A stretch of 64,000 bases of DNA, taken from the IMG/VR virus record IMGVR_UViG_3300022602_000024, positions 124,001-188,000 of that record. The stretch is one strand, 5' to 3'. Made by a program: the position numbers and the translations under genes. The notes beneath the pieces are model-generated. The model saw only the letters and a list, made by a program, of their open reading frames with translations. It did not search any database and was not told the DNA's origin. Of the stretch, positions 1-18,717 are shown in pieces. Position 1 is the first letter of the stretch. Each line of letters begins with the position of its first letter.

Positions 1-983
1 CTAGTGATCAAGTGTTGCCATACTTCGGGCACCTGATGAAAATTCAAATTTGTAATCACAGTATTAAAATTCACTGAGTTTCTTGGATTATTTTTTTCTG
101 CTAACCAATCAAATATAGAATCTATGTTTTTTTGTATGTAAGGCCAACGACTAGGAGTTCTTTGTATGTATGCAATATCATCTATGGCATCTATACTTAA
201 ATTGAACATGACTTGATCAAAATTTCCCAAAATATCCAGCAAACGTTTGTTGACATTGGTACAGTTGGTGTTGATGAATGCCAATATGTGTTGACTATGT
301 CCTGTTGTAACTAGATCTTCTAAGAAATCTATGTTTTCTTTGATAATGGTTGGTTCTCCGCCAGTGAGCCATACCGTTTCCAATGAACTGTAATGATCTT
401 TCAGTATAGTAGCCAATGGTCTCTTAACTGGCCAATCATAAAGATCTCCAAACTCGCCACCGTTGAGAACTCCAATGGATGTTTTGCTAAATTTAATTTG
501 TTGTTTTGTAGTAATATTTCTATCTAAGAAAAATTCTGAATATTGTATACTGTTGTCAGGCCCACACATTTTACAGGCCAGGTTGCATAAATTGCCGGTA
601 CTGATCTGCATGTCAATCCAGTCAACATTTAATTCGCCATTATTTTCTGCTGCATACTGGATTCGATCCTGCACACGACTCAATGGTATTCGATCATTGG
701 CATTTTTTCTTACACTATTGCCTTTGGTGTGATCTTTATTTTCTAGTTTCCAACAAGAGTTACAACATTCAGGTTCCTTGCCGTTGATTAAATCTAATCT
801 TAATTGTTTTTGTTCTTGGCTATTCCAAAAATCAGATATATTGTGTGTATTAACATTATATACTTGTTGTTGATCGTCGGTCATTCTACCAAGTATGGCA
901 CAACATGATACTATATCGCCATTGGGCTGAATCATATTGTGTGCAAAAGGATATGCACAAATTGTAGGACTGTGTATTTCCAT
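1..983 (-). CDS. Radical SAM protein with N-terminal SPASM/twitch-like Cys region (partial, runs off window start)
   Basis: Manual translation from ATG at 983 (not in ORF track): MEIHSPTICAYPF..SCC..CCNSCW, CxxxCxxC motif CNLACKMC at 564-587, LTGGEP motif; no stop before position 1. Confidence 0.85.
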   Translation of the reverse strand, partial: MEIHSPTICAYPFAHNMIQPNGDIVSCCAILGRMTDDQQQVYNVNTHNISDFWNSQEQKQLRLDLINGKEPECCNSCWKLENKDHTKGNSVRKNANDRIPLSRVQDRIQYAAENNGELNVDWIDMQISTGNLCNLACKMCGPDNSIQYSEFFLDRNITTKQQIKFSKTSIGVLNGGEFGDLYDWPVKRPLATILKDHYSSLETVWLTGGEPTIIKENIDFLEDLVTTGHSQHILAFINTNCTNVNKRLLDILGNFDQVMFNLSIDAIDDIAYIQRTPSRWPYIQKNIDSIFDWLAEKNNPRNSVNFNTVITNLNFHQVPEVWQHLIT

Positions 984-2359: not shown

Positions 2360-4312
2360 CTATTTTTTATAAAGTGCTCGTAATACCTGTTTTAACAGGT
2401 GTTGCACAGTGGGATCAGATGCAGGCAAATTGGATTTGGTTTCCATACTGTAAGCAATATCATTCCACTCTTTGTTTTCTATGGTATTCAATGATCCATT
2501 TGAATTGGCAGAGTTGATTGCTTTCAATCCTGCAATGGTAATGGGCACTATTTGATAAGTGGCAAAGCGCCCGCCTACGGTTCTGTTAATTCTCATGCCT
2601 GCTAATCCTGTTTTGGCTTTTGCAGCAAATTCTTGTTTAACAGCATCTCCAACTGCAACAGGTACGATTTTGACATCTGTTTGTTTAAGTCGACGCTCCG
2701 ACAGATAGTAGTTCAATGCAGTAGTCATTTTGCTATCAAATGCAGCCAACCCAACATTCAATACTGGACTACCTTTGGTACGCAGATAATTTACCAATGC
2801 ACTGGAATCAGCTGGATTTACTGGTCGTTGGTCTTGTGTTATTTTTGCTAATTTTGTCTTGTATTCTTGCACATAAGCAGCAGGATCACTGGCAATGATC
2901 ATGGCACGAACAAAACGTCCCACTGCATTTTTAATGCCCTGCAGGTCCGCCAAGTAGTTGCCGCCAGCATGACGGAAACTGATATACTTGCCGTTGTTGC
3001 TGATACTGGCAGTATGTGCACGGGATACATTGTTGGCAAAGTCGGCTAATTTTTTAATATCAATGGTTGTAGCCTGTGCAGGACGCCCAAACACATCAGT
3101 CTTTTTCTTTTTGACCTTGACATCATTCTCCCAGTTTCCACCTGATAAATCTCGAAACACACTACGAGCATAGTCATTGCCTTCACGACCAAAGTATTTG
3201 AGCACATACTCGTCGCCTAAGAATACTGCCAGTTTAAGTACATCTAACTTTTGTGGGATACTGACATTGATGTGTAACCCTGTACTGTCATTTGTGTATA
3301 GGCCCATTTGTTGTGCAAGGCCATAAAATCGGTTTAATGCGGTCATAGCATCCAAGGCCGGCAATGGGGGACTGACAATTTCTGCAGCAGAATCTTCTTC
3401 ATTGTCAGGCGATAAACTACCATCAGGCTCAATATACCAGTCAGTGAGGTTTTTTGCTTTCTGATGATAACTATGGAACACCTGAACTGTGCTTTCCATA
3501 GCAGTAGTCACTGCTGGTTGTAGTACTGCAGCAGCATCTTCGTAACTGCCCCCATCATCTTCATCATCGTAGTAGTCATCACTTTCATAATCAGTTAATC
3601 TCAATTGATCCCAGACTGTGGATGGATCATAGGTGAAGTATTGACTGGTATGCACATCAACCCGGCCGTTGCCAGTTAGCCAGATCAAGAAGCCTTTCCA
3701 TGAAGTGCCTGCGGCAGCCATAGAACGCATACGTACACCTAGTTGTTCTAACTCATTGTTACTGTTTTTTATGTATAGCAAATAACCAACCATTCGTGCA
3801 AATTTCAGTTGATCTGACAATTTTTTACTGGCAAAACTGAAACTGCGATCATCATCTGCGCGAATACGTTTGACAGCAAGATCGGAATATTTTTTCTGTT
3901 GTGTTGGGGTCAGTTTGTTATACAGTTCAATAACACCAGGCAAGATACCGTCTTTGAAAGCTGGATATGCTGCGGTCGCAGTATCGAATCCTTTGAGTGG
4001 TTGCTTGAATCGAAATACAGAATCAAACCACTCGGGAGTCAGATCAATATCGGCCTGGCGACCACCAATTCGTTCATCCCACACATTGTTCTGATACAAG
4101 GCGTCATCTGTTTGATCTGTGGTATAAGCGGGCTTTTCTCCAGGTTCTTCAGCAGGAGTACCTTTGACAGTAGCCTCGGGCACACATACTTCAAATTCAA
4201 ATCCAACTAACACGCCAGCGGCATGTCCTTGCTCTACTGCTTGTGCAAAGGAAGTAGGGTCCATACGGACTTCATCTAATTCGGGTTGGTGGGCAAATTC
4301 TGTAATCTTCAT
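2360..4312 (-). CDS. Putative amidoligase (COOH-NH2 ligase type 2) with capsid-targeting-like leader
   Basis: Motifs VGFEFE, WYIEPDGSL, AEIVSPP, TNDSTGLHINVS; N-terminus MKITEFA. Confidence 0.75.
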   Translation of the reverse strand: MKITEFAHQPELDEVRMDPTSFAQAVEQGHAAGVLVGFEFEVCVPEATVKGTPAEEPGEKPAYTTDQTDDALYQNNVWDERIGGRQADIDLTPEWFDSVFRFKQPLKGFDTATAAYPAFKDGILPGVIELYNKLTPTQQKKYSDLAVKRIRADDDRSFSFASKKLSDQLKFARMVGYLLYIKNSNNELEQLGVRMRSMAAAGTSWKGFLIWLTGNGRVDVHTSQYFTYDPSTVWDQLRLTDYESDDYYDDEDDGGSYEDAAAVLQPAVTTAMESTVQVFHSYHQKAKNLTDWYIEPDGSLSPDNEEDSAAEIVSPPLPALDAMTALNRFYGLAQQMGLYTNDSTGLHINVSIPQKLDVLKLAVFLGDEYVLKYFGREGNDYARSVFRDLSGGNWENDVKVKKKKTDVFGRPAQATTIDIKKLADFANNVSRAHTASISNNGKYISFRHAGGNYLADLQGIKNAVGRFVRAMIIASDPAAYVQEYKTKLAKITQDQRPVNPADSSALVNYLRTKGSPVLNVGLAAFDSKMTTALNYYLSERRLKQTDVKIVPVAVGDAVKQEFAAKAKTGLAGMRINRTVGGRFATYQIVPITIAGLKAINSANSNGSLNTIENKEWNDIAYSMETKSNLPASDPTVQHLLKQVLRALYKK

Positions 4313-4452: not shown

Positions 4453-6417
4453 TCATAAATTAATCTGCGGTGATTTACCAACCCAGCGTGAATCTCTAAT
4501 AATGGTTCCTACTTTAAAGTAGTTATCATCTACTTTGCGTACACCCATAGTGATCCAATTGTCATTACGGGTATCAGTAAATGCATATCCAGTACCATTG
4601 GGTTTGTCTTTAAAATATCTTAGTCCGCGATTCAACATGGCTGCACAGGCTTCCATCAATTGTTCAACCGTCATTCTGGAGCCTCTATTCAATTTGATTT
4701 GATCAAAAAAGTGCTTGGTAAACTCTAATTTAATACCCTTGGCATGGGCAAAGTGTTGTGTAGCTGTTGTCACTAGTTGTAGTTTGCGCATCAGTTCTTC
4801 GGTATAATAGGGATCAACTTCCCAGTCACTGTGTTCGTGAATCTTTTTAGCCTTGCCGGCTTTCATGTTGGCCAACCAATGTGCCATGCGTTGTTTTTCG
4901 CCTGTACTGTGTTTGGCAACATTTCTTAATGTACTTACGCTGGCTTTGGTATTAACGCCTGAACGTTTAGCAAGTCCTTTGCGTCCGGGATGTTTACCAT
5001 CAGCAAAGTTTTCTGCCACACCTTGCTTAACGAATTGAACGTTTAATTTGGCATTCTTCCACAACGGATTCTTAGGATCCATTCTTTGTTGTAGCAACCA
5101 TATAGCGGATACTCTGTGTGCCCCATCTTCAAACTTGCCGTTTAACACTATTATTGGATCGAGTTGGGCTAATGACTCTGGATGTTTTTTAAAATACTCA
5201 GCATACTCTATTGCCTTTTCAGTTACGTTCCAACTGTGGTAATCTTTAGCGTCCCAATCATCAACTACATTGTTATAGTAAGGCACACCGGGTATAGATG
5301 ATATAATCTGGCCTACAGTCATTTTGCGAGTTGTTATCTTTGCATCGGACGCAAATGGTTTAGGCTTACCAGAACTTGGTCCCGGTTGTGGGACACCATC
5401 GGCAAAGTTTTCCCATACATTTTTACCCGGCTTGTGCTTGTCCCAAAAGCCAGCACCAGCATCAGTCTGTTGACCACTGCGGCGAATTTTATATCCTTTG
5501 CTCTTTACGTAGTCATACATTGTTTTAGCAATACCTTGACTACGATAGCGTTCGTCAACTTCCAAGTCCTGTGGTAATAATTCATCACCATCAAAGGCAA
5601 ATAATACATGACCTAACTCACGACCATTACTACTTGCAGTAACATACATTACTTGGTTATCATAATCGTCATCATCAACGTATTCATCATCTTTTTGTAT
5701 TTCAATATTGATATCTATACCATTAAATGCTTCTTCTTCTAAACTTTCGCCACGATAAGGACGTACCCAAGAGAAACGTGTGCTGGCCGGAATCCACTTT
5801 AATCCTAAACCGCGATTGCCTTTGGCTGGATCAGTGTCAATCAACAACCAGTCTTTTTCATCGCTAAACTTTACTTCGTGTTGCCGACGAATAATACGCA
5901 CAATCTTGCCTGTGCTTTCAATCTTGGCCATCATGGCAGGCTCTGTGTCTTCATCTAGGAATGTGCTGGCAATCTTACGACACAGATTTTTTAACTTTTC
6001 ATTCTTTGTTTCTACTACGCGGAAACGTGCTGAACTGGTATCTTGTGTGGGATCAATGTATCCACAGTATACACGTTTAATACCTACTCCGTGTAAAAAT
6101 CGACTGCAACTTTCGTCATGGCGATCATCCATTGCTTCACTGCAAGGACTCAATGTTGTAATGACTGTAGATCCTGGGGGAACAGGACCGTTTTCACTAA
6201 CGTAAGCATTGACAGCTACACGTTCAGCGTGTATGCGCTTGCCCTCTGAATCGGGCAAGTTAATACCGCAAACTTCTACTCCGTTGGGATCTAACACACA
6301 AGCTGCTACGCAACCATATGTGTCTTCATCACGTTCTTGTCCAGAAATGACCATTTCGCATAACCTGGCCAGTATGCGATCTAAATGTTCTGTACTGAGT
6401 ATTTCTTTAGTCTGCAT
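4453..6417 (-). CDS. Modular polyprotein: Zn-dependent deaminase + small domain + GNAT + ParB-like + basic module + FTKHF C-terminal domain
   Basis: HAE..TTLSPC..C deaminase motif; RYRSQGIAKTMY GNAT motif A; PIIVLNGKFEDGAHR ParB-like; junctions VWENFADG and GVAENFADG. Confidence 0.7.
   Translation of the reverse strand: MQTKEILSTEHLDRILARLCEMVISGQERDEDTYGCVAACVLDPNGVEVCGINLPDSEGKRIHAERVAVNAYVSENGPVPPGSTVITTLSPCSEAMDDRHDESCSRFLHGVGIKRVYCGYIDPTQDTSSARFRVVETKNEKLKNLCRKIASTFLDEDTEPAMMAKIESTGKIVRIIRRQHEVKFSDEKDWLLIDTDPAKGNRGLGLKWIPASTRFSWVRPYRGESLEEEAFNGIDINIEIQKDDEYVDDDDYDNQVMYVTASSNGRELGHVLFAFDGDELLPQDLEVDERYRSQGIAKTMYDYVKSKGYKIRRSGQQTDAGAGFWDKHKPGKNVWENFADGVPQPGPSSGKPKPFASDAKITTRKMTVGQIISSIPGVPYYNNVVDDWDAKDYHSWNVTEKAIEYAEYFKKHPESLAQLDPIIVLNGKFEDGAHRVSAIWLLQQRMDPKNPLWKNAKLNVQFVKQGVAENFADGKHPGRKGLAKRSGVNTKASVSTLRNVAKHSTGEKQRMAHWLANMKAGKAKKIHEHSDWEVDPYYTEELMRKLQLVTTATQHFAHAKGIKLEFTKHFFDQIKLNRGSRMTVEQLMEACAAMLNRGLRYFKDKPNGTGYAFTDTRNDNWITMGVRKVDDNYFKVGTIIRDSRWVGKSPQINL
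5011..5025 (-). repeat. GVAE linker repeat, variant CAAGGTGTGGCAGAA
   Basis: In frame within 4453..6417; one synonymous change from the core repeat. Confidence 0.75.
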
Positions 6418-6790
6418 GCTTCAACCCAAAGTATTCAGGATTGGCTTGAGCAAAGTCACGCATGATGATGCCGGCATTGCTGTTGGCTTCGTTTTCTTCT
6501 GGGGTACCAGTTTCGCCAGCACCGTCGTACAACTTGCCCTCTAAGTCTTGCTTGTAGTGTGTGAGTTCGTGTGCTAGTGTTCTTAATACATCAACAGGAT
6601 GACGACCAGCAACCACCAGTTCAATAGACTTGGTGTTGGGATTATATCCGCCAAAACTGGTGTCTACAGGGCGTGCTAATAATTTAATAGGAGGCAATTT
6701 TTCCAGCTCTAATCGTTCGGCTACCCAAGGGGCAAACCGATGAACAAACTGCTTGGCCATGCCTTCAATTAAAAAATCACTTGCTCTCAT
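6407..6790 (-). CDS. HEXXH zincin-like metallopeptidase domain protein with leader MRASDFLIE
   Basis: LRTLAHELTHYKQ motif. Confidence 0.6.
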   Translation of the reverse strand: MRASDFLIEGMAKQFVHRFAPWVAERLELEKLPPIKLLARPVDTSFGGYNPNTKSIELVVAGRHPVDVLRTLAHELTHYKQDLEGKLYDGAGETGTPEENEANSNAGIIMRDFAQANPEYFGLKHAD

Positions 6791-7142
6791 TCAAAATCCA
6801 CGTCTGTGCCGATTCTAACAATTGTTGTAATTCTTCTACACTCTCACAATGCCATTTACGCAATGACTTGTTGATACGGCTATTTGGATCATGTGCAGTT
6901 TTTGCACTAGTACGACTCTTTTTCATGCCCTTCATACGTGCGCAGAAACTGGCACGACGTTTGGCAGCTTTTGATCCTTTTTTCAGTTTACTGGGTTTAG
7001 TAGTTACAGCAGTCTGTAGTTTGCTACCAGGATGTTCTTTACGATAACTGGCAACACCTTTTTTGTTCAGTCCGCCGTTTTTGTTCTTGCCTGATTTTTT
7101 CTGCCAGGCTGCAGTTTCTGTGACAATTTCTTCAAATTTCAT
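6777..7142 (-). CDS. Basic phage protein with leader MKFEEIVTE
   Basis: Start moved to 7142 for ATGA overlap with the dps stop; Lys/Arg-rich AAWQKKSGKN..RRASFCARM. Confidence 0.65.
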   Translation of the reverse strand: MKFEEIVTETAAWQKKSGKNKNGGLNKKGVASYRKEHPGSKLQTAVTTKPSKLKKGSKAAKRRASFCARMKGMKKSRTSAKTAHDPNSRINKSLRKWHCESVEELQQLLESAQTWILNESK

Positions 7143-7573
7143 TTTGATGTGGCCCTTAACATCCATGCGTGTTTACGGAACGCGTCCATACGTTCTGCTA
7201 AGAAGTTGCTAAATCCATGCTCGCCCTCGGCTTCGGCAATATCATATACACGCTTTAAAATCAATACCATATTCTCAGCATCTTGTAATAGTTCAGCAAC
7301 CATTTGTTCACCAGGTACAACTTCGGTAGCATCATCAATGCCGCTCAACACACTGAAGCGACTGTTACTACCAGGAGCATAACTGCCTAGGGCACGAATC
7401 TTTTCTGCAAACTCATCCACGGTACCATATACTTCAGTGTAGATGGTTTCAAACAATGCGTGTAGTTCTTGGAAGTTGATGCCTTCTACATTCCAATGAA
7501 AGAACGCAGCTTTCAAATAAAATGTAAATTGGCTAGCAAAGGCTATCTTTGCGGCTTTGGCTAATTCGTTCAT
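7139..7573 (-). CDS. dps: Dps / DNA-binding ferritin-like protein
   Basis: FHWNVEG..LHALFE..DEFAEKIR..HAWML motifs; start at 7573 by ATGA coupling. Confidence 0.9.
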   Translation of the reverse strand: MNELAKAAKIAFASQFTFYLKAAFFHWNVEGINFQELHALFETIYTEVYGTVDEFAEKIRALGSYAPGSNSRFSVLSGIDDATEVVPGEQMVAELLQDAENMVLILKRVYDIAEAEGEHGFSNFLAERMDAFRKHAWMLRATSK

Positions 7574-9687
7574 AGGTCGTATCCTGCTGCTTTCATTTCC
7601 TGTAGTCGCCATTGTATCTCAAGGCGTTCTAATCTTTGTTGTTGTGATTCGTTTAGGCCTGGTGTTCCGGGAATAGCACTTGAGCTATCGTTGGGCACAC
7701 TAGCGGCTGCTGGGTATTCGTTTAGGCTTTCGTGTGCCCATTGATCGTGCTCACTGCTCCATTGTCCTTGCCCATCCGACCATGAGTCTTCGTCGATCCC
7801 ATTTTTAAATGGCCAACCACTGGCATCTTCTTCGGCATATTGCTTGTGCACTTCACGAGCCTTCTTTTCGTCGGCATCACGGCTTTGTACTACTTTAGGC
7901 TGTGGTGCTACGGGTTCTTTTTCAAACTCTTTACGCATTTGCGACAAACTGGTATTGGGTTTCTTAGCCGCAGGCTTTGCAGTTTGGAATCCTAGTATTT
8001 CGTCAACTTGACCTTTGGTGCTATCTTCTTCAGTTTTTTTCTTTAAGAAGTTAGGAACCGTGGTATTTCGATCAAGTCTATCAACTGTGGTTTTAGTTAT
8101 GCTTGGCTTTATTTTTGTGGCAATTTTTCGATCGTTCCAATTGACGTCAGCATCCTTGGGATTCATTAATTCTATATCACGGTCGTTTTTAGATAAAGAG
8201 TTTCTATCATCTGGCCAACGTTGACCTTCCGCCACACCTTGCTGTTTACCGCGAACAAAATAATACACATCAACGTCTCTGTTGGCGGCATTTAGTTTGT
8301 TGGCGTAATCTTCTGCCTCTTGATCATTATTGAATGTTTTTACTACTTCGGTTTCGTGGTCTCTTTCGCCATTTGGATACAATGTAGTATCTTGGCGATA
8401 AACGATCCATGACATAGTAGAGCCTTCCGCCACACCTTTCTTTTTCAATGTATCAGGATGTGCTAGACCTTTTTTGACTTTTTCTGCCTGACTCATTTTA
8501 TCAACTTGTTTGCCAAGTTTGGGATCAACATCGTGCCAAGTCTGTGGATGTGGCTTTTTGTCGCCTTCCGCCACACCTTGCTTCTTCATATACTTCTTAC
8601 GCAATTTTAAGTCTGCTGGCGTTGCTTTTCTGATTAAATTCAAATATTTGTTTACTGGAATTTCTTTTATCTCAATGGGTTTGATGCCTTCTACTCCGGG
8701 AATAGAATGAAACTCTCTGCTATTGCCACCTTGAACAAACTGTGGTTTTCCATCTGGACCCTTGAATGGTAATTTATGTAGATACACATATTCACCTTTT
8801 CTAATCTGGCCACTGAACAAAACCATTTGTGGATCATTGGGGAACATACCTGTGTCTGAACCTGGTGTAGTCAGACCCATGGCTATAGCAACTTTTGGAT
8901 CTGAAGTAGCGTAGATAGCATTTTGATTACTACCAGCGGCACCACCTGTATCTACAGATTGTCTTGGTTCTAACATAGTAATCTTTTGTCTTGACCCATG
9001 CCAAAGATAGGTATTAATAACTTTGCCTTCCGCCACACCTTGCTGTCCAATTTGAAGATATTCAGTGGGCCAATCAAACACTATGTTATCGTATGCATCA
9101 AACACTGTCTCGAGGTAATCTCTTAACTCGTCAGGTATACGCTCTTTACTCCATGCTTTGGGCATTTCAGAATCATCGCCGTGCCATGCTTTCCAAGCCA
9201 TTGGGGTCCAATAGTCTAAGGCATCACTATCCAAATTGCCGGCTTTTTGCAATGCTGGAGCAACAGACTTAAACCCTTCTCTGTTGGCCCAAGTAGCAAA
9301 GATTTTGTGATAAGGCTTGTTATTTGCCACTGCCCATTGATATAGATCTCGTACATCAGTTGGTGGCATTTGTGTATCAGGAATACGTGGTTCTTTTTGC
9401 ATCCTGCCCATCATGGTATCAAATCGCTTGTCGCCAGTTGCCTCCGCCACACCCTCTGACTTGGGCTTTTTGTGATGCTTCTTCATGTTGATGGCAATAG
9501 CAGCCTGTTGTGCGGCATTGGCAGCTTCTTCTACTGACTCATTGGGCACACAGTTATTGACTCTGACACCACCTTTGATCTTGGTGCCTTCTTTGTGCTT
9601 GCCAGTCCAGCACTTGGCATCCAAGCGTTGTTTAATCGCCCGGGCTTCTTTAACAGTTAGTGCATCAACAATATCATTTAAAAGCAT
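7570..9687 (-). CDS. Modular polyprotein with five GVAE(G) linkers, including an ADP-ribosyltransferase-like module
   Basis: Linkers at 9453, 9039, 8577, 8436, 8238; module 2 has LWHGS..AIYATSD..E pattern. Confidence 0.75.
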   Translation of the reverse strand: MLLNDIVDALTVKEARAIKQRLDAKCWTGKHKEGTKIKGGVRVNNCVPNESVEEAANAAQQAAIAINMKKHHKKPKSEGVAEATGDKRFDTMMGRMQKEPRIPDTQMPPTDVRDLYQWAVANNKPYHKIFATWANREGFKSVAPALQKAGNLDSDALDYWTPMAWKAWHGDDSEMPKAWSKERIPDELRDYLETVFDAYDNIVFDWPTEYLQIGQQGVAEGKVINTYLWHGSRQKITMLEPRQSVDTGGAAGSNQNAIYATSDPKVAIAMGLTTPGSDTGMFPNDPQMVLFSGQIRKGEYVYLHKLPFKGPDGKPQFVQGGNSREFHSIPGVEGIKPIEIKEIPVNKYLNLIRKATPADLKLRKKYMKKQGVAEGDKKPHPQTWHDVDPKLGKQVDKMSQAEKVKKGLAHPDTLKKKGVAEGSTMSWIVYRQDTTLYPNGERDHETEVVKTFNNDQEAEDYANKLNAANRDVDVYYFVRGKQQGVAEGQRWPDDRNSLSKNDRDIELMNPKDADVNWNDRKIATKIKPSITKTTVDRLDRNTTVPNFLKKKTEEDSTKGQVDEILGFQTAKPAAKKPNTSLSQMRKEFEKEPVAPQPKVVQSRDADEKKAREVHKQYAEEDASGWPFKNGIDEDSWSDGQGQWSSEHDQWAHESLNEYPAAASVPNDSSSAIPGTPGLNESQQQRLERLEIQWRLQEMKAAGYDL
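8225..9453 (-). repeat. Five dispersed in-frame copies of GGTGTGGCGGA(A/G)G
   Basis: Plus-strand ccttccgccacacc at 8225, 8423, 8564, 9026 and cctccgccacacc at 9441; spacings 198, 141, 462, 414 nt. Confidence 0.9.
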
Positions 9688-10412
9688 TACTTTTGTCCTA
9701 ACTTGGCCTGTTTAATAGCATTAGCAACTTGTGTTACTTGTGCAGGATTACCGGTAGTAATCAAATCTTCGATAGACTTGCCCAACGCACCTGTGGTCTT
9801 TTTAGCAGCTTGATCCATGCCTTGTCCTGTTGCAGGATTTGCTTGTGGATTATTGGCCATTTTAACTGCACTTTGTGCGGCCTGTGAGGGACTTGTAGTC
9901 ATATTCACACCAGCGGACTTTAATTTGTTTATATTTTGTTGTGCGTTTTGCACTTCTTTGTTCATTTTGGCAGCATCAATGGGATTACCTGTTGTTCCGG
10001 TTGCTCCAGTGGGCATGATGTTTTCTTCAACATACTTTGACCACTCGTTCATTAGTTCTTCTTCTAGACTTGCATCTTCAGCACATCCGCCTACACCTTG
10101 GCCGGGTTTGGGAGTACCTTTATCGGTGCCCTTCCAGTAACCGCCAAACTTAGAACCACTGGCATGATGTTCAGCATCAGCCATTGAATCTTCTTCTACA
10201 TCTGCGTTGATGTTTTTTTCATCGGGCACTACTCTGGCTATATTGGCCAGAGATATAGCTCTATTGTCTGCAGCTTTTTGTACAATTGCTTTGGCTTGTG
10301 CAGCGGCTGCAGGGGATGGTTGGTCTATTGTGGCTGGCTTACCAAAGTTGCCTTCATTGCCTTCATCCAAACGTTTGAAGATATTTAATATATCTGCGAA
10401 ATTGTTATCCAT
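9687..10412 (-). CDS. Hypothetical low-complexity (A/Q/N-rich) protein, possible head cargo
   Basis: Coupled to both neighbours; leader MDNNFADILNIFKRLDE. Confidence 0.6.
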   Translation of the reverse strand: MDNNFADILNIFKRLDEGNEGNFGKPATIDQPSPAAAAQAKAIVQKAADNRAISLANIARVVPDEKNINADVEEDSMADAEHHASGSKFGGYWKGTDKGTPKPGQGVGGCAEDASLEEELMNEWSKYVEENIMPTGATGTTGNPIDAAKMNKEVQNAQQNINKLKSAGVNMTTSPSQAAQSAVKMANNPQANPATGQGMDQAAKKTTGALGKSIEDLITTGNPAQVTQVANAIKQAKLGQK

Positions 10413-12367
10413 TATTTTACCTTCTTAACGTTGGTTAGTCTATTGCCGTAGCCACTGAGTTTCTTTTGCAGTGCTTTACGAGTAAATGCTTCGTCGCCAA
10501 ACTCACTTACCACACTAGCAATACTGCTGGAACTAGTTGCACCTGCATCTTCTTTAACTGTTTGTTTGCTTTCACGGAATCCGCGACGCTGACTCAAAAG
10601 ATCTTCATAATCAGAATCATCTTCTTCGTGATCTGGACGTGCTACACCAGTGCCACCACATGATCTGCAACTGGTTCCTTCCCATTGGCCTTCGCCAGTG
10701 CCACGGCAATTATAACACTCGTGATCATCGTCATCCTCGTGTGAGCCTTCTGCCATGCCGCCAAATCCTGTCTTGGCTTTGTTGTACATTTTTTCAACAT
10801 TGGCATCACTAGCAGGACCAACATTTGGCGCTTGGGTCTTCTGCTGAATTTCTTGATCTTTATTGTATTTTTTACCGGAGCTAGTTGTTAGCATTTGTGA
10901 TAACTTCTTAATTAGATCAATGCCAAACTTTGCAAATAAAAATTCTGCGGCCCATTCTAATCCATTATCTACTAGGGTTTCTTTCAACTCATCTTTAGCT
11001 ACATCAGCTACTGCGCCGGCAACCCCGGCATGAGCAGCTCCTGCTACTGCTGCATGACCAGCTAGTCCCACACCTAAAGCCATAACAACAAGATCTTTCC
11101 ATTGTGCGTTCATAAATTTGATCTGTGCAGGGGTTGCTTTACCTTGTCTTTTCAAATTTAAAATTTGAAGCATTTGCCATGTTTCTTGTGCTTCATTTTG
11201 GCCTATAGTGAATAGTTTGGTTAGAAAACTAGGAACGATATTGGCAAATTTAGTTATTCCATTTAATGAGAAACCTTCTGCTACATCTTGTGGTAGTGCA
11301 TAAGTTTGTGCAAAAATATCTTTTTTAACAGCACCATAATCATTGGCACCGTGGCGAACAATGTAGTCGTTGCCTGCGGTATATTGTAAGTCTCCCCAGC
11401 TGGTATGTAGTACACCATCGTGGTCAGCTAACTTGGCTAACTTGGGAATTTTTTTGGGAGTAGCGGTACCGTCGCCGTTGTCATCATATAGTTTGGCAAA
11501 CTTAGCTGGTTCCACTGGATATTGCTCACCTTTGGGCCCAGTAATAATATGTGCCTGAGCAGAATGTTTCATCGGACCTTCTAGTGTTTTGACTGTACCT
11601 GGTTGTCCTGGTACTGTGTATTTGACAGGGGTGGCCTTTTTATAAGTTTGGAATGCGCCTTGTTTGAACCAAGCATCATTGATCGCTGGAGAATCGCCCT
11701 CCGCCACACCTTGCTTAACTGTTTTATAAGCACTCTGTAAAACAAACATATATTCTTTATCTGTGATATCCGGTAGTATACCTTCAACCGCGGTACTAAA
11801 AAAGTCATCACCTGCTATCATATTCATAGCATGTATCATACCCAATTCATCAACATTTTTTTGTTTTGCTACTTGTATAGCAATTTCCAATAGTTTTCTT
11901 AATCTACGACTTCTTTCATTATCGCCACCGTCGTTATTTGGAGGAACAAACTCATTTAAATTGCCCTCCGCCACACCTTCGGGTTCTCTAATAGCAGGAT
12001 TGTCAATCTGTTGAGCAACTGCTGTTAGGCTTTCATTGCTATTGGTAATCTTTTTGTACATCCATGCTTCAAGTGGAGTTCCTGATTTCACATGTTGATA
12101 AATCTTCTTAGCATCCTGTACAATGGCTTTTAATTCACCCAATGCCATGCCGTCTAATTGTTCGTCTTCTGACATGTCCTTATTATAATGCTTTTTAACA
12201 TCATTAGCAAATTGTTTTTTGGTGGCCTTTACTATACCGCTAAAACGCTTGTCTCCGCGCTTGTAGTTGCCGGCTTTGTCAGCCGCACTTGCATCTGCGC
12301 CTGCGGCAGTTTTGTAACGTGCTAGTGCATCGTTGCTTAATTCTGTGACAAATTCTGTAGGTTTCAT
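10412..12367 (-). CDS. Modular polyprotein with GVAEG/DVAEG/GMAEG linkers and a DnaJ-type Zn finger
   Basis: Leader MKPTEFVTE; linkers at 11977, 11710, 11287, 10759; CYNCRGTG..CRSCGGTG. Confidence 0.75.
   Translation of the reverse strand: MKPTEFVTELSNDALARYKTAAGADASAADKAGNYKRGDKRFSGIVKATKKQFANDVKKHYNKDMSEDEQLDGMALGELKAIVQDAKKIYQHVKSGTPLEAWMYKKITNSNESLTAVAQQIDNPAIREPEGVAEGNLNEFVPPNNDGGDNERSRRLRKLLEIAIQVAKQKNVDELGMIHAMNMIAGDDFFSTAVEGILPDITDKEYMFVLQSAYKTVKQGVAEGDSPAINDAWFKQGAFQTYKKATPVKYTVPGQPGTVKTLEGPMKHSAQAHIITGPKGEQYPVEPAKFAKLYDDNGDGTATPKKIPKLAKLADHDGVLHTSWGDLQYTAGNDYIVRHGANDYGAVKKDIFAQTYALPQDVAEGFSLNGITKFANIVPSFLTKLFTIGQNEAQETWQMLQILNLKRQGKATPAQIKFMNAQWKDLVVMALGVGLAGHAAVAGAAHAGVAGAVADVAKDELKETLVDNGLEWAAEFLFAKFGIDLIKKLSQMLTTSSGKKYNKDQEIQQKTQAPNVGPASDANVEKMYNKAKTGFGGMAEGSHEDDDDHECYNCRGTGEGQWEGTSCRSCGGTGVARPDHEEDDSDYEDLLSQRRGFRESKQTVKEDAGATSSSSIASVVSEFGDEAFTRKALQKKLSGYGNRLTNVKKVK
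11697..11977 (-). repeat. Two in-frame copies of GGTGTGGCGGAGGG
   Basis: Plus-strand ccctccgccacacc at 11697 and 11964, 267 nt apart. Confidence 0.9.
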
Positions 12368-12391: not shown

Positions 12392-12667
12392 TTATTCGGA
12401 TATAACAAAGTCGGTTGCGGAAGCGGCACCATTGACTTTGATGTTTCGAACAGTAATAGATCCATGTCGATTCACGTGTTCTATTCGTACTGAGTGCAGT
12501 CCAGGTTCTAAATTTACTATGATATTTTCTTGTATATAAACTTCGGGACCAGGCCAAGTAAAGTCCCGCTCAGTAAGCAAATCATCATCCACATATACTC
12601 GGTAAGTTGGATGCCCCGTACTCCAGGATGCATAAACATCTACAAGTATAGAGCATTCTTGGATCAT
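12392..12667 (-). CDS. Hypothetical beta-rich protein
   Basis: ORF track; 4-nt overlap with upstream gene. Confidence 0.6.
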   Translation of the reverse strand: MIQECSILVDVYASWSTGHPTYRVYVDDDLLTERDFTWPGPEVYIQENIIVNLEPGLHSVRIEHVNRHGSITVRNIKVNGAASATDFVISE

Positions 12668-13752
12668 TTTAAGCCTCTACCAATGCCACCTTTGATGGGT
12701 TGTTGTCCAGTTTTTGTGGGTTTGCGTCCTGTTAGTCCCAAGGCTTTCATTTCTTTGCCCAAGGTATCGCCTGTTACATCGTTTTGATCACCAGCAGTGG
12801 CCATAACATAACGAGGATCGTTTCCACCTCGAACAACACCTACCCCGCCCATTTCAGCAACACGCCCATAGCGTTCTTCACCTTCAGACGGTTTCCAAGA
12901 AAAGCGATTTTCGTGAGCCATGCGCTTTTGTACTAGTGTATTGATAATTCTGTCTAATTGGTCTTTGGGTACATGTTGTGCTACTAGTTTGGTCTTGCTG
13001 TTTCGATTCATGGGTTCGTAATACAAATCAACAAAAGCAGGATCTATAATACGTACTTCATTTAGTCCAGCGGCTTTGACAGTTTTAGGAAGTTTAACAG
13101 GTCTTGGTGCTTCAATTGGGGCAGCAGGAGCAAGTTTATCGGTCATTAGTTTTTCGGCTTCTACTGTATACTTGCCAAACAAATCTTTAATAATCGCTTG
13201 ACGTGTTTTTTCATCTGCAGCCACATACTGCGCACGCAACTCAGTACCTGATCGCATGGGTTGTCCTAGTACATCAAAATCAAATGTAGGAACAGTCATA
13301 ATATAAGCATGACGATTCATGCCTTCTGTTTCCTTCATGTTACCCGGCATCTTTTGCAAGTAAGCAGGTGTGCCGTCTTTTTTGGTAAAGGATTTGAAGC
13401 GTGGATCTTCGGCCATGTCTTTTTCGCTCACTGCAAAGATCACCACAGTATTGGCAGGATCAGCAATGCTTAAATTACCGCCAGTAATAACAGTTTCAAT
13501 TTGATATGGGCTTGTTGCTTGTATGATACGGTCAGAAGGAACCCCTGTTAGTTGCATAAAGTAAGCCTTTTCTGCAAAACTAAAGGGGCTCTTTGGGGGT
13601 TCTACTTTATTACTAGTAGCAATATAGACGTTGTTGCGTCCGTATTTTGTGGTTAGATAGTTATATACCGCGTGGTGACCTTTGTGAAAAGGCTGAAAAC
13701 GCCCAGGGTATATAACCAACAGTTGTGGTTCTGATAATTCCGTAATATACAT
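12664..13752 (-). CDS. Cytidyltransferase-like (HIGH-motif) nucleotidyltransferase with leader MYITELSE
   Basis: IYPGRFQPFHKGH motif; SPFSFAEK; RSGTELR. Confidence 0.75.
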   Translation of the reverse strand: MYITELSEPQLLVIYPGRFQPFHKGHHAVYNYLTTKYGRNNVYIATSNKVEPPKSPFSFAEKAYFMQLTGVPSDRIIQATSPYQIETVITGGNLSIADPANTVVIFAVSEKDMAEDPRFKSFTKKDGTPAYLQKMPGNMKETEGMNRHAYIMTVPTFDFDVLGQPMRSGTELRAQYVAADEKTRQAIIKDLFGKYTVEAEKLMTDKLAPAAPIEAPRPVKLPKTVKAAGLNEVRIIDPAFVDLYYEPMNRNSKTKLVAQHVPKDQLDRIINTLVQKRMAHENRFSWKPSEGEERYGRVAEMGGVGVVRGGNDPRYVMATAGDQNDVTGDTLGKEMKALGLTGRKPTKTGQQPIKGGIGRGLK

Positions 13753-15740: not shown

Positions 15741-16472
15741 TTATTTAGCAGGTGGTACTACCAACTCATGAATATTTGTTACCAAACCTGGGCTTATAAG
15801 GTTCAAAAACGTAACAATAGACAAATCATTGGCGTAGAAGTACAGACTCCACATATAACCACTGGTTGATTGTAGTGCTCTACTTAATCCCCCAGTCATT
15901 TTAACTATTTCTTTGTCGGCTGAATTAAAATAATTCCACAACTGTTGTCTTGTTTCCCCGGGATAAAATCCATCTTTGAGTATTATTTTGTATCGGTATC
16001 CATTGTCAGTTTTTTTAATAATGGCACCAGAATTTAAAATTTCAGCAATAAAAGAATCTTCGGGTCCTGCAAGACCATGAGTATATTTTTTAAACAACAC
16101 GGGTGCTTGATCTACAATCTCTACTAGATCGTCTTCGGACTCTGTGTAGATTTGAATCCATGGTTCCTCTACTCGAATACGTGTATTGATAGTACGATCC
16201 TGCTTGAGTTGACGAATATGTTCTAAAAACTCAATATCGGCAGCTTCTAGGTCACGAGTTCTGCGACCCCACCAGCCAAAATGATTCATGTCTCGGTCCC
16301 AGACCTTTCGATGTTCAATAGTGCTCTCAATATCTTTGCTGTCAATGGCACGTCCACCAGGGGCATAAACCACAAGTTTGTAAAGATACTGATTAAAGTA
16401 TTTTTTAGTAGTGTGGGCTATTTCAATCTTAGGATTGAACTGAGTCCAGAACAATATATCCATTTGAATCAA
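15741..16472 (-). CDS. Hypothetical protein
   Basis: 243-aa ORF downstream of clpA. Confidence 0.6.
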   Translation of the reverse strand: MIQMDILFWTQFNPKIEIAHTTKKYFNQYLYKLVVYAPGGRAIDSKDIESTIEHRKVWDRDMNHFGWWGRRTRDLEAADIEFLEHIRQLKQDRTINTRIRVEEPWIQIYTESEDDLVEIVDQAPVLFKKYTHGLAGPEDSFIAEILNSGAIIKKTDNGYRYKIILKDGFYPGETRQQLWNYFNSADKEIVKMTGGLSRALQSTSGYMWSLYFYANDLSIVTFLNLISPGLVTNIHELVVPPAK

Positions 16473-18717
16473 TCATAGGTGAGGTTGGTGTAAATGGTCC
16501 CAACACATTGAATTTAAATTCTTTGTCAAAATCAACTTCTATAACGGTATTTACAGGCACATTTTCAAAAAGTATTTTTTTACTAAGTGGGACTTTAATC
16601 AAATCATTGATCTTACGTCCTAGGGGTCTAGCACCCATTTTGGCATCGTATCCTACTTCTGCCAAGTGATCTACCGCAGTTTCTGTAACACGAATACGAA
16701 TAGACTTTTCGCTAAGTAATTCATTAATTTCATTAATGAATTTACCGACAATTTTCTTGATACTCATGTTATCTAGTTTGTTAAACTTGCAAATACCGTC
16801 TAAACGATTACGAAACTCAGGTCTAAAGAAGTCTTTAACAGCCTTGTCGTCTTCGTCGGTTTTTTGTAATGCAGTACTAAATCCAATAGTATTGCGTTCA
16901 TTGTCGCTGGCACCCAAGTTACTAGTAAGAATAACAATGGCATTACGAGCATCAGCTTTTTTGCCATTACTGCTGGTAATCATACCTTCGTCCATTAAGG
17001 CCAGCAGGATGTTGGTAACGTCTGGGTGTGCTTTTTCAACTTCGTCGAATAAAATAATACAGTTAGGATTCTTTTCGATATCACTAATCAACATACCGCC
17101 ACCTAAGTTGCTGTCATCGTAGCCTACATAGCCCGGGGGTGCACCGATCAGTTTTGCAACTGTATGCTTTTCTTGATATTCACTCATGTCATAGCGTAAC
17201 AGTTTCATACCCATGCCTTCAGCCAATAACTTGGCCAATTCTGTTTTACCAGTACCTGTTGGGCCTAGAAACAAATAACTACCCACAGGCTTGTCCGGAC
17301 TCTTGAGTCCGGCACGAGCAACATAGATCTTTTCCAACACAGTATCTACTACTGTGTCTTGTCCGTACAACTTGTTTTTAATTGTTTCTTCCAGTCCTAC
17401 TAAGCTCTTGGTTGATTCGTTACCAATTTGTTCCACAGGAATCTTGGTAAACTTACTGATAATGTCTACAATATTGCTCTTACGTACAGTCCATCCCATA
17501 GCATTGATTTTTAACTTGGCGGCTGCAGTATCAATCAAGTCAATGGCTTTGTCAGGCAAACGTTTGTCTGGTTGATAACGCACACTTAAATCTACTGCAG
17601 ATTCAATAGCATCGTCACTGATATTGCCACCATGAAACTCTTCAAAATACTCACGTAGTCCACGTAAGATTTCTTTGGCAGTTGCTGGAGTAGGTTCTTC
17701 TACTGTTAGTCTACAGAATCTGCGCATTAGGGCACGATCTTTTTCAAAACTTTGTGTATATTCTTCCCATGTGGTCGAAGCAATAACTTTGATTTGTCCT
17801 TTGGTCAATGCAGGTTTAATCATGTTAGCAAAGTCTACACTTGATCCACCACTGCCAGCACCTGCACCACGCATTTGATGTGCTTCGTCAATGAACAATA
17901 TACATTTGCCTTTGGTTTGTAATGCACCAATAACGTCTTTGAACTTTTCTTCAAACTCGCCACGATACTTACTACCAGCAAGCAATGATCCGATATCTAG
18001 ATTGTAAACGACATAATCACGCAGGTAACCGGGAACTTCACCATTGACAATGTTACGTGCCAGGCCTTCGGCAATGGCAGTCTTACCTACTCCAGCATCT
18101 CCTACTAGTAATACATTTGATTTATTGCGTTTAGCTAATACCTGTGCTATTTCGTCTAGTTCAAATTCACGTCCCACTACAGGGTCAATACGACCTTCAC
18201 GTGCTTGTACATTTAAGTTTTCGCAATGTTCTTTTAGTATTTCGTCGGCACGAGCACTCATAGTACCACGGCGTGGTTTGGTTTCAACATAGTAACTGTT
18301 GTAGAACTCAACTACTGAGCTACGCTCCATTCCGTATTTGACAAAGAAGTAACTAGCGTAACTATTTGTTTCTCCAGCAAGACTCAAAAAGATATCGACA
18401 ATCTGTACATGATGGCGACCGCTAAACAGGACTTGTGTAAGTGCACGATTAAACACACGTTCTAAACTGTGTGTTTTCTTTGGAACACAATCTGCTTCGT
18501 TACTGACCAAATAAGTTTGTTTATTTAAATAGTCTTCTATATCATTCAGTAACCCAACAGTATCTACACCAAATGCAGTCATCAGGTCATTAAATGGTTT
18601 AAAGGTCATTAAGCCGTGTGTGAGATGCTCTAGCGTAACATACTCATGATTATATTTTTTTGCAATGTCTGTGGCATTGGCAATAACGACTTCAATTTCG
18701 GGATTGTGTTGTATCAT
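16429..18717 (-). CDS. clpA: Clp/Hsp100 ATPase, ClpA-like
   Basis: N-domain, Walker A GDAGVGKT and GPTGTGKT, FIDEAH, LIGAPPGYVG, FRPEFRNR, GARPL; no ClpB middle domain seen. Confidence 0.9.
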   Translation of the reverse strand: MIQHNPEIEVVIANATDIAKKYNHEYVTLEHLTHGLMTFKPFNDLMTAFGVDTVGLLNDIEDYLNKQTYLVSNEADCVPKKTHSLERVFNRALTQVLFSGRHHVQIVDIFLSLAGETNSYASYFFVKYGMERSSVVEFYNSYYVETKPRRGTMSARADEILKEHCENLNVQAREGRIDPVVGREFELDEIAQVLAKRNKSNVLLVGDAGVGKTAIAEGLARNIVNGEVPGYLRDYVVYNLDIGSLLAGSKYRGEFEEKFKDVIGALQTKGKCILFIDEAHQMRGAGAGSGGSSVDFANMIKPALTKGQIKVIASTTWEEYTQSFEKDRALMRRFCRLTVEEPTPATAKEILRGLREYFEEFHGGNISDDAIESAVDLSVRYQPDKRLPDKAIDLIDTAAAKLKINAMGWTVRKSNIVDIISKFTKIPVEQIGNESTKSLVGLEETIKNKLYGQDTVVDTVLEKIYVARAGLKSPDKPVGSYLFLGPTGTGKTELAKLLAEGMGMKLLRYDMSEYQEKHTVAKLIGAPPGYVGYDDSNLGGGMLISDIEKNPNCIILFDEVEKAHPDVTNILLALMDEGMITSSNGKKADARNAIVILTSNLGASDNERNTIGFSTALQKTDEDDKAVKDFFRPEFRNRLDGICKFNKLDNMSIKKIVGKFINEINELLSEKSIRIRVTETAVDHLAEVGYDAKMGARPLGRKINDLIKVPLSKKILFENVPVNTVIEVDFDKEFKFNVLGPFTPTSPMIDSNGYIVLDSVQS

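Follow-up and report, generated by a model that had tools for sequence, protein, structure and literature searches.

What is the role of an enzyme-like module that lies between two identical short repeats inside one long reading frame of an uncultured phage? The question is posed by a 705-aa polyprotein encoded in a 64,000-nucleotide stretch of DNA (hereafter, the window), i.e., bases 124,001–188,000 of the 354-kb viral record IMGVR_UViG_3300022602_000024, which is 98% complete. A preliminary description of this DNA had proposed a cassette resembling an ADP-ribosyltransferase (ART), bounded exactly by two linker repeats and injected into the host. On balance, and with moderate confidence, we favor the reading that the module belongs, as one of several cassettes, to a head-targeted effector polyprotein in a T4-related jumbo myovirus, and would be packaged, released by the prohead protease, and injected as an ART effector.

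The 15-mer GGTGTGGCGGAAGGC, encoding Gly-Val-Ala-Glu-Gly, is found without mismatches at both ends of the module (9025–9039 and 8563–8577), where the repeats had been placed previously (9039 and 8577). The segment between them, 8578–9024, comprises 447 nt, or 149 aa. The length of 154 aa given in the preliminary description is obtained only if one 5-aa linker is counted, and of its interval 8578–9025 the lower end is correct, whereas the upper end lies one base too far. The motifs YLWHGS, AIYATSD, and REFH noted there are all present, with the respective His, Tyr, and Glu codons at 8998–9000, 8911–8913, and 8713–8715.

Matches to the repeat are far more frequent than expected: six were found in the window versus 0.04 expected, and this number was reached in none of 100 shuffles. 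The same six sites are the only ones in the whole 354,429-bp genome when up to two mismatches are allowed, and all of them are in frame and on one strand. They include one-mismatch copies at 11696–11710 and 11963–11977, beyond the 705-aa open reading frame (ORF). At the protein level, the motif G[VIL]AE[GAN] is limited to three ORFs situated near one another. A function of the linker as an internal ribosome-binding site was considered and judged unlikely: regions upstream of genes in this genome are enriched in AAGGA and AGGAG, the linker has only GAAGG, and an ATG follows one linker only.

The structure of the module was modeled twice with AlphaFold, once for the window module itself from a 40-sequence alignment (predicted local distance difference test, pLDDT, 86) and once, from a different alignment, for P0167, a stand-alone relative that is about 30% identical (pLDDT 94.5). 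In the former model, YLWHGS is located on the strand 6–11 and IYATS on the strand 38–40, a helix spans residues 43–49, and Glu104 opens the strand 104–107. The top 50 structural neighbors of both models are almost wholly chains of the ART superfamily. For the window module, these are KptA (Z 8.3), the Rhs toxin TreX (7.0), pertussis toxin S1 (6.7), diphtheria toxin (6.4), and Arr (6.2), with PARPs, ParT, MbcT, RES, and DarT at lower ranks; for P0167, KptA (Z 7.4) and Arr (6.9 over 113 residues) are followed by pertussis toxin S1, TreX, LT, Scabin, and PARP10. The best Foldseek matches of the models are Arr, TreX, and Tpt1, with E-values of 0.025–0.3 for Arr and Tpt1. The aligned ranges place the invariant His (His9 in the window module, His8 in P0167) on H862 of PARP1 and H887 of PARP10, which we take to be catalytic residues. 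The structure search suggested as a check in the preliminary description thus returned the ART fold from two independent models, and on these predicted structures an ADP-ribosyltransferase fold with a conserved set of His, Tyr, and Glu (or Gln) is supported for the module. Both models also have as a neighbor residues 1419–1645 of chain B of PDB 9k3a, the pre-ejectosome of cyanophage A4 (Z 4.8 and 4.5), possibly a solved ART-like fold within a phage ejection protein.

The sequence family is large and has retained the same positions. A word search yielded 39 metagenomic relatives of the module, and an exhaustive profile search yielded 241 representatives at E ≤ 1e-3. Close relatives carry the module within proteins as long as 1,622 aa; distant relatives are mostly stand-alone proteins of about 150 aa. 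His9, Tyr38, and Phe96 are invariant down to approximately 25% identity, and Gly10 and Ala39 (each at least 90%), Ala46, and Arg132 come close to invariance. At position 104, the residue is Glu or Gln; many distant members have Gln, and Glu is conserved in at least 90% of the close subgroup found in phage polyproteins. The motifs on which the ART assignment had originally been based are those conserved in this family.

The assignment holds for the fold and does not extend to any curated model of an ART family. The closest described family is DUF6886 (PF21820), matched by 26 of 33 distant members at 12.8–23.6 bits (best E 1.8e-6; cut-off 27 bits). These matches span the region of strands 4–5 only, and the window module itself does not match DUF6886. 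Clusters of this family are nevertheless listed as nearby by both the shape and the feature searches of the ESM Atlas; no paper in the searchable literature mentions DUF6886. ART-PolyVal (PF18760, Tox-ART-HYD2; cut-off 31.2 bits) is matched neither by the module nor anywhere in the genome, and only by two of the 33 distant relatives (E 0.014). One distant member matches Arr-ms (E 0.049), and there is otherwise no significant similarity to Arr or KptA/Tpt1. Strand 1 of the module bears His instead of Arg, and a search of the genome for an Alt-type ART (PF03496), NadV, or a Macro domain found none. In sequence terms, then, the module is outside the ART-PolyVal, Arr, and Alt-type families. Since all DUF6886 matches lie under the 27-bit cut-off, we describe the modeled module as a domain with the ART fold whose family has no name and is related to DUF6886 at a sub-threshold level.

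The core of the module is minimal, approximately 125 aa, and has no evident target-binding domain. In distant members of the family, fusions to NUDIX domains occur in either order (E 1e-18 and 2e-9), and a fusion to a Zeta-toxin/AAA_33 kinase is also seen. The NUDIX fusions and the company of nucleotidyltransferases (see below) agree with a putative link of the module to nicotinamide adenine dinucleotide (NAD) or ADP-ribose. Given the minimal size, the KptA and Arr neighbors, and the NUDIX and kinase fusions, the target could be a protein, a nucleic-acid end, or a small molecule. The same observations bear on a different explanation, namely, that the ART fold is genuine but nothing is transferred to host macromolecules, the module being instead an NAD+ glycohydrolase, a binder of ADP-ribose or NAD, an Arr-like modifier of small molecules, or a KptA-like enzyme acting on RNA 2'-phosphates or nucleic-acid ends. 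The top structural neighbors (the NAD lobe of KptA/Tpt1, and Arr), the small core, and the Gln at position 104 in many distant members are all in line with such an activity, and the fusions fit nucleotide or ADP-ribose metabolism equally well. However, the module lacks the N-terminal RNA-binding lobe of KptA, its setting among host-directed enzyme modules favors an effector role, and Glu104 is conserved precisely in the phage-polyprotein subgroup. We consider this explanation rather doubtful, albeit one to be taken seriously.

The evolutionary behavior of the linkers was studied in 42 IMG/VR loci bearing the module; as they were collected by the ART module, the breakpoints apply to this module. 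In these loci, the module is found at positions from 7 to 1,602 of reading frames of 171 to 2,548 aa. Clustering of the flanks of 112 full-length module instances gave 50 clusters on the left and 53 on the right. Homology between the cassette and eight close relatives (92–95% nucleotide identity) begins 2–7 nt before linker 1 and ends 0–4 nt after linker 2, and nothing aligns with these relatives in the 300-nt flanks on either side. Comparison of the loci thus identifies the linkers as the exact breakpoints at which related phages exchange the module, and the phrase "bounded exactly" of the preliminary description is true both of the sequence and of its evolution.

The linker is also conserved at the nucleotide level. 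GTG accounts for 18% of Val codons in the genome and GCG for 6% of Ala codons, whereas at 31 GVAEG sites in differing contexts of related phages GTG was observed 28 times and GCG 29 times; the conservation of third codon positions around the linker spans about 17 nt. Selection at the protein level cannot explain this; recombination through the linker and the resulting homogenization could. Tentatively, and with somewhat less than even confidence, we suggest that the linker (CAA)GGTGTGGCGGAAGG(C), of 15–17 nt, serves both as shared DNA-level microhomology by which effector cassettes are swapped between polyproteins within a lineage of jumbo phages and as an encoded prohead-protease site that frees each cassette. 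If so, the dual-purpose linker would give rise to a plug-and-play array, every recombinant being automatically packaged by the leader and correctly processed, and the array would be the polyprotein counterpart of the hyperplastic internal protein (IP) locus of T-even phages, delivering an uncharacterized ART family.

A protease of the appropriate type is encoded by the same genome. A Peptidase_S77 prohead protease of the T4 gp21 type (PF03420; 89.1 bits vs. cut-off 27) is located at genome positions 16876–17325 (gene, 16741–17379), adjoining homologs of the portal and of the major capsid protein (MCP), and is 37% identical to T4 gp21. The T4 homologs of the three proteins are gp20 (portal), gp21 (protease), and gp23 (MCP), and the MCP is 65–70% identical to those of Vibrio phage 2.275.O, Sinorhizobium phage Phosso, Pseudomonas phage PA5oct, and Rak2-like coliphages. 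Judging from the gp21-type protease, the gp20 and gp23 homologs, and these MCP relatives, the phage is a jumbo myovirus whose head is assembled by a T4-type pathway.

Candidate head-targeting leaders accompany the module. The first 10 residues of T4 IPIII constitute a capsid-targeting sequence (CTS) (PMC9026906); the protein starts with MKTYQEFIAE/A, and IpI with MKTFKEF...ITE/A (here and below, a slash marks an actual or candidate cleavage position). Module-bearing polyproteins of relatives start with MRATEFIIEGVAEG, MRAQEFITEG, MRATEFIIEG..., or MKPTEFLREF, and a homolog of the first module of the window polyprotein begins with MRINEILTE/A in a relative. At locus L015, the entire protein consists of MRANEFIVEGVAEG followed directly by the ART module (MRANEFIVEGVAEG-SEQKYLWHGS), which is the classical architecture of the T4 internal proteins. 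CTS-like starts are likewise present in neighbors of the polyprotein gene in the window: MKPTEFVTE (10412–12367), MRASDFLIEG (6407–6790), and MKITEFAHQPE (2360–4312). Outside the window, similar ORF starts are seen at genome positions 344007–344417 (MKITEIIAE/A), 259841–260275 (MRIKEIIFESE), 238410–238811 (MRASEILRK), and 198108–200582 (MRFKEIKPLAE). Judged by their starts, candidates for head targeting seem to be dispersed over the genome.

Proteases of the gp21 family cut after Glu, with the specificity L/I-X-E in T4, S/A-X-E in phiKZ, and A-X-E in SPN3US (PMC9026906; PMC5694885). Upstream of the module, a Glu is situated 3–10 residues before strand 1 in 93 of 94 unique contexts. In 91 of these 93, the P3 residue is Val, Leu, Ile, or Met (background, 21%); P2 is variable, usually Ala, and P1' is mostly Gly or Ser. 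The pattern of an aliphatic residue, any residue, Glu, and a small residue is kept where the nucleotides and residues of the linker have diverged, e.g., VTE/G, VVE/S, MSE/S, and IDE/G, indicating selection on the protein motif. Similar sequences occur in head proteins of the phage itself, i.e., MLAE/N near the N-terminus of the MCP, in the region that aligns near the T4 propeptide cut FLTE/A, and AIAE/A near the N-terminus of the scaffold-like protein. The linkers fit the aliphatic-X-Glu site of the gp21 family and probably are protease sites; GVAEG itself is found in no phage paper of the searchable literature. The term "linker repeats" of the preliminary description is therefore apt but incomplete, as the repeats are also recombination breakpoints and probably sites of cleavage.

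The polyprotein could instead act uncut, as a classical polyvalent protein, with the GVAEG repeats serving as flexible spacers and recombination joints. The partners of the module in polyproteins are CTP_transf_like, deaminase, GNAT, NTP_transf_2, ParB_N, Amidoligase_2, and zincin domains, and the repertoire of ART, GNAT, Pol-beta nucleotidyltransferase, ParB, zincin, and deaminase domains is that of polyvalent proteins, which in some cases reach the host without processing (PMC5512222). Moreover, recombination alone could account for the breakpoints and for the nucleotide conservation of the linkers. On the other hand, the aliphatic-X-Glu-small pattern is retained in diverged linkers, the motif is the one for which the protease family found in this genome is specific, and it also terminates the CTS-like leaders. 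We find an uncut polyprotein unlikely.

Another candidate for the processing enzyme is the HExxH zincin-like protein encoded at 6407–6790, or else a host protease, acting at the linkers possibly after injection. The zincin gene is adjacent to the polyprotein genes in the window, its domain is present in 10 related loci and lies inside the ART-bearing polyproteins of loci L031 and L033, and autoprocessing of polyvalent proteins by metallopeptidase domains has been proposed by Iyer et al. (PMC5512222). Most ART-bearing polyproteins have no zincin, however, and an invariant Glu at P1 with an aliphatic P3 is the documented signature of serine proteases of the gp21 family. Cleavage by the zincin or a host protease in place of the prohead protease thus seems very improbable, and the zincin-like protein remains a candidate for either an alternative processing peptidase or another effector.

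For the preferred reading of a packaged and protease-released effector, the following sequence of events may be envisaged. The N-terminal capsid-targeting leader would take the polyprotein into the prohead core, where the prohead protease would cut after the Glu of each Q-G-V-A-E/G linker and free the ART of about 17 kDa together with its sister modules. The freed modules would be ejected with the DNA into the host, and the ART would use NAD+ for ADP-ribosylation of a host macromolecule at an early stage of infection. The 15–17-nt linker would double as microhomology for cassette shuffling, so that any recombinant would still yield correctly released modules. The injected ART postulated in the preliminary description is supported by the gp21-type protease in the genome, the linkers that fit its site, and the T4-like leaders of relatives.

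Several observations weigh against this reading. As regards the enzyme, the module has no match among the Pfam, PHROGs, NCBIfam, and PADLOC models, and a comparison of PDB sequences with the single protein and two family profiles gave chance matches to ribosomal protein uS5 only. The structural Z-scores of 6–8 are in the middling range; for this reason, the fold comparison was repeated with P0167, and the case rests on the uniformity of the neighbor lists and not on the height of the scores. Glu104 is a candidate catalytic position by the order of strands and the approximate ranges in the models. As regards cleavage, in 43 ambiguous contexts the choice of the Glu favored an aliphatic P3. The phage is uncultured, and a tblastn search of 50,697 phage records with the module and the whole polyprotein returned no match; neither did a megablast search with the region.

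The remaining contrary observations concern packaging. The N-terminus of the window polyprotein (MLLNDIVDA...) resembles the T4 CTS less than those of its neighbors and relatives do. The ART gene is about 115 kb away from the head module (genome positions 131.6 kb vs. 14–20 kb), and the T4-type late promoter TATAAATA is not enriched in the window (4 matches vs. 5.2 expected), the only match near the gene cluster being 6 nt from a start codon. One could conclude that the protein is made and acts in the infected cell without being packaged, and that the leader-like N-termini are coincidental, the more so as no promoter class could be assigned to the gene. Nonetheless, starts that fit M-[KR]-x-x-[EQ]-[FI]-[IV]-x-E are seen repeatedly in the neighbors and in relatives of the module, and the IP and alt genes of T4 also are scattered away from its head cluster. 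The absence of packaging is, in our opinion, quite unlikely.

Table 1. Coordinates of the polyprotein gene, its linkers and ART-fold module, and neighboring genes (window numbering)
Feature	Coordinates	Strand	Description
Polyprotein gene P0001	7570..9687	-	705 aa; at least six modules set apart by five G-V-A-E-[G/A] linkers
Leader MLLNDIVDALTVKE/A	9646..9687	-	Putative diverged capsid-targeting sequence ending in a V-K-E site
Linker 0	9439..9453	-	GVAEA
Linker 1	9025..9039	-	Exact GGTGTGGCGGAAGGC (GVAE/G); 5' boundary of the cassette; homology breakpoint; candidate prohead-protease site
ART-fold module P0002	8578..9024	-	149 aa, polyprotein residues 222-370; H-Y-E configuration
His9-Gly10-Ser11	8992..9000	-	Predicted strand 1; candidate NAD-binding His
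Tyr38-Ala39-Thr40	8905..8913	-	Predicted strand 2, followed by a helix
Glu104 (REFHS)	8713..8715	-	Opens a predicted strand; candidate catalytic residue
Linker 2	8563..8577	-	Exact GGTGTGGCGGAAGGC; 3' boundary of the cassette; homology breakpoint
Linker 3	8422..8436	-	Exact copy of GGTGTGGCGGAAGGC
Linker 4	8224..8238	-	GGTGTGGCGGAAGGC with one mismatch (last codon GGT)
Polyprotein, 651 aa	10412..12367	-	Start MKPTEFVTE; GVAEG twice, DVAEG and GMAEG linkers
Polyprotein, 654 aa	4453..6417	-	Cytidine/dCMP deaminase (E 9e-10), GNAT-like and ParB-like segments; GVAENFADG and ENFADG linkers
HExxH zincin-like protein, 127 aa	6407..6790	-	CTS-like start MRASDFLIEG

Two further polyproteins are encoded close to the one described here (Table 1). 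The 651-aa polyprotein contains a sub-threshold PGDYG-like module and a zinc-finger-like CxxCxGxG stretch (a weak match to the central domain of DnaJ), and its N-terminal 60 residues have a match in a hypothetical protein of Synechococcus phage BUCT-ZZ01. In the 654-aa polyprotein, ENFADG constitutes a second type of linker, joined once to the first type as GVAENFADG; an ENFADG junction is also observed 3' of the ART module in several relatives. The zincin-like protein has weak matches to DUF6647, Peptidase_M91, and DUF6782.

A ferritin/Dps-like protein (7139–7612, minus strand; Pfam E 4e-21) is encoded directly downstream of the ART polyprotein, overlapping its end, and is kept in 11 related loci. 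A cytidylyltransferase-like nucleotidyltransferase (12664–13752, minus strand) ends in the linker-like GRVAEMGG; its best NCBIfam matches are nicotinamide mononucleotide (NMN) adenylyltransferases, far below the threshold. In L006:5146-6477, a homologous nucleotidyltransferase domain and the ART module share one reading frame, a fusion that possibly pairs NAD synthesis with NAD use. A DUF6321 protein (6777–7166, minus strand; E 1.5e-17) may represent another shuffled module; in relatives it is found inside a 556-aa protein near a deaminase polyprotein. Other genes of the window include a ClpB/ClpA-like double AAA+ protein of 762 aa (16429–18717, minus strand; phrog_4871, E 1e-238) and an ORF running off the window end (3–983, minus strand), whose cysteine-rich CxxxCxxC-type motif suggests a radical-SAM/SPASM-type enzyme.

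Except in T4 and a small number of phiKZ-like phages, little is understood of how arsenals of head-packaged ARTs and polyvalent injected proteins are assembled, processed, and diversified. The locus offers a testable rule, i.e., a leader followed by enzyme modules each bracketed by one conserved linker. If this rule is true, module boundaries could be read from the sequence in hundreds of polyproteins of uncultured phages, a probable NAD-linked activity would be provided for about 240 representative proteins that now have no annotation, and a naturally occurring scheme for filling large capsids with proteins of choice would be suggested.

Both the packaging of ARTs into heads and the existence of ART-bearing polyvalent proteins are established ideas (PMC5512222; PMC9503650). 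Three elements appear to be new, having not turned up in the searchable literature: the ART family, the combination of T4-type leaders with multi-enzyme polyproteins, and a linker, conserved at the nucleotide level, that is both a breakpoint and a site of the protease type.

Among the known systems, Arr and the NAD lobe of KptA/Tpt1 are the best structural neighbors of the module, being minimal ART domains of similar size with H-G-[ST] on strand 1; the setting of the module, however, is a phage effector polyprotein and not antibiotic resistance or RNA repair. In the giant phages phiKZ (gp175), 201phi2-1, and SPN3US (gp245), related proteases also cut after Glu, often at multiple sites per protein. 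Such cuts trim the propeptides of structural or inner-body proteins in these phages (PMC5694885; PMC9026906) and are not described there as conserved linkers between independent, shufflable enzyme modules.

Polyvalent proteins are predicted injected multidomain proteins in which the ART is the commonest modifying domain (Iyer et al., 2017; PMC5512222). The polyproteins described here are similar in that several unrelated effector domains, i.e., ART, GNAT, nucleotidyltransferase, ParB, and zincin, are united in one polypeptide (169–2,547 aa); in contrast, ART-PolyVal has an H-Y-D triad, whereas the third position here is Glu or Gln. A term search of Iyer et al. (2017; PMC5512222) did not turn up T4-CTS-like leaders or repeated linkers conserved at the nucleotide level.

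The precedent for a packaged ART activity is Alt of T4 (PMC9026906; PMC5512222). Alt belongs to the R-S-E clade, whereas the window module is of the H-Y-E type and is unrelated to it in sequence, with no match to PF03496. The overall likeness to IPI, IPII, IPIII, and Alt comprises the T4-type head module, the protease of the gp21 family, the leaders in neighbors and relatives that resemble MKTYQEFIAE/A, and the cleavage-type motifs ending in Glu. The T4 internal proteins, however, are single small proteins with one leader each, while in this phage enzyme modules are strung together with near-identical internal linkers.

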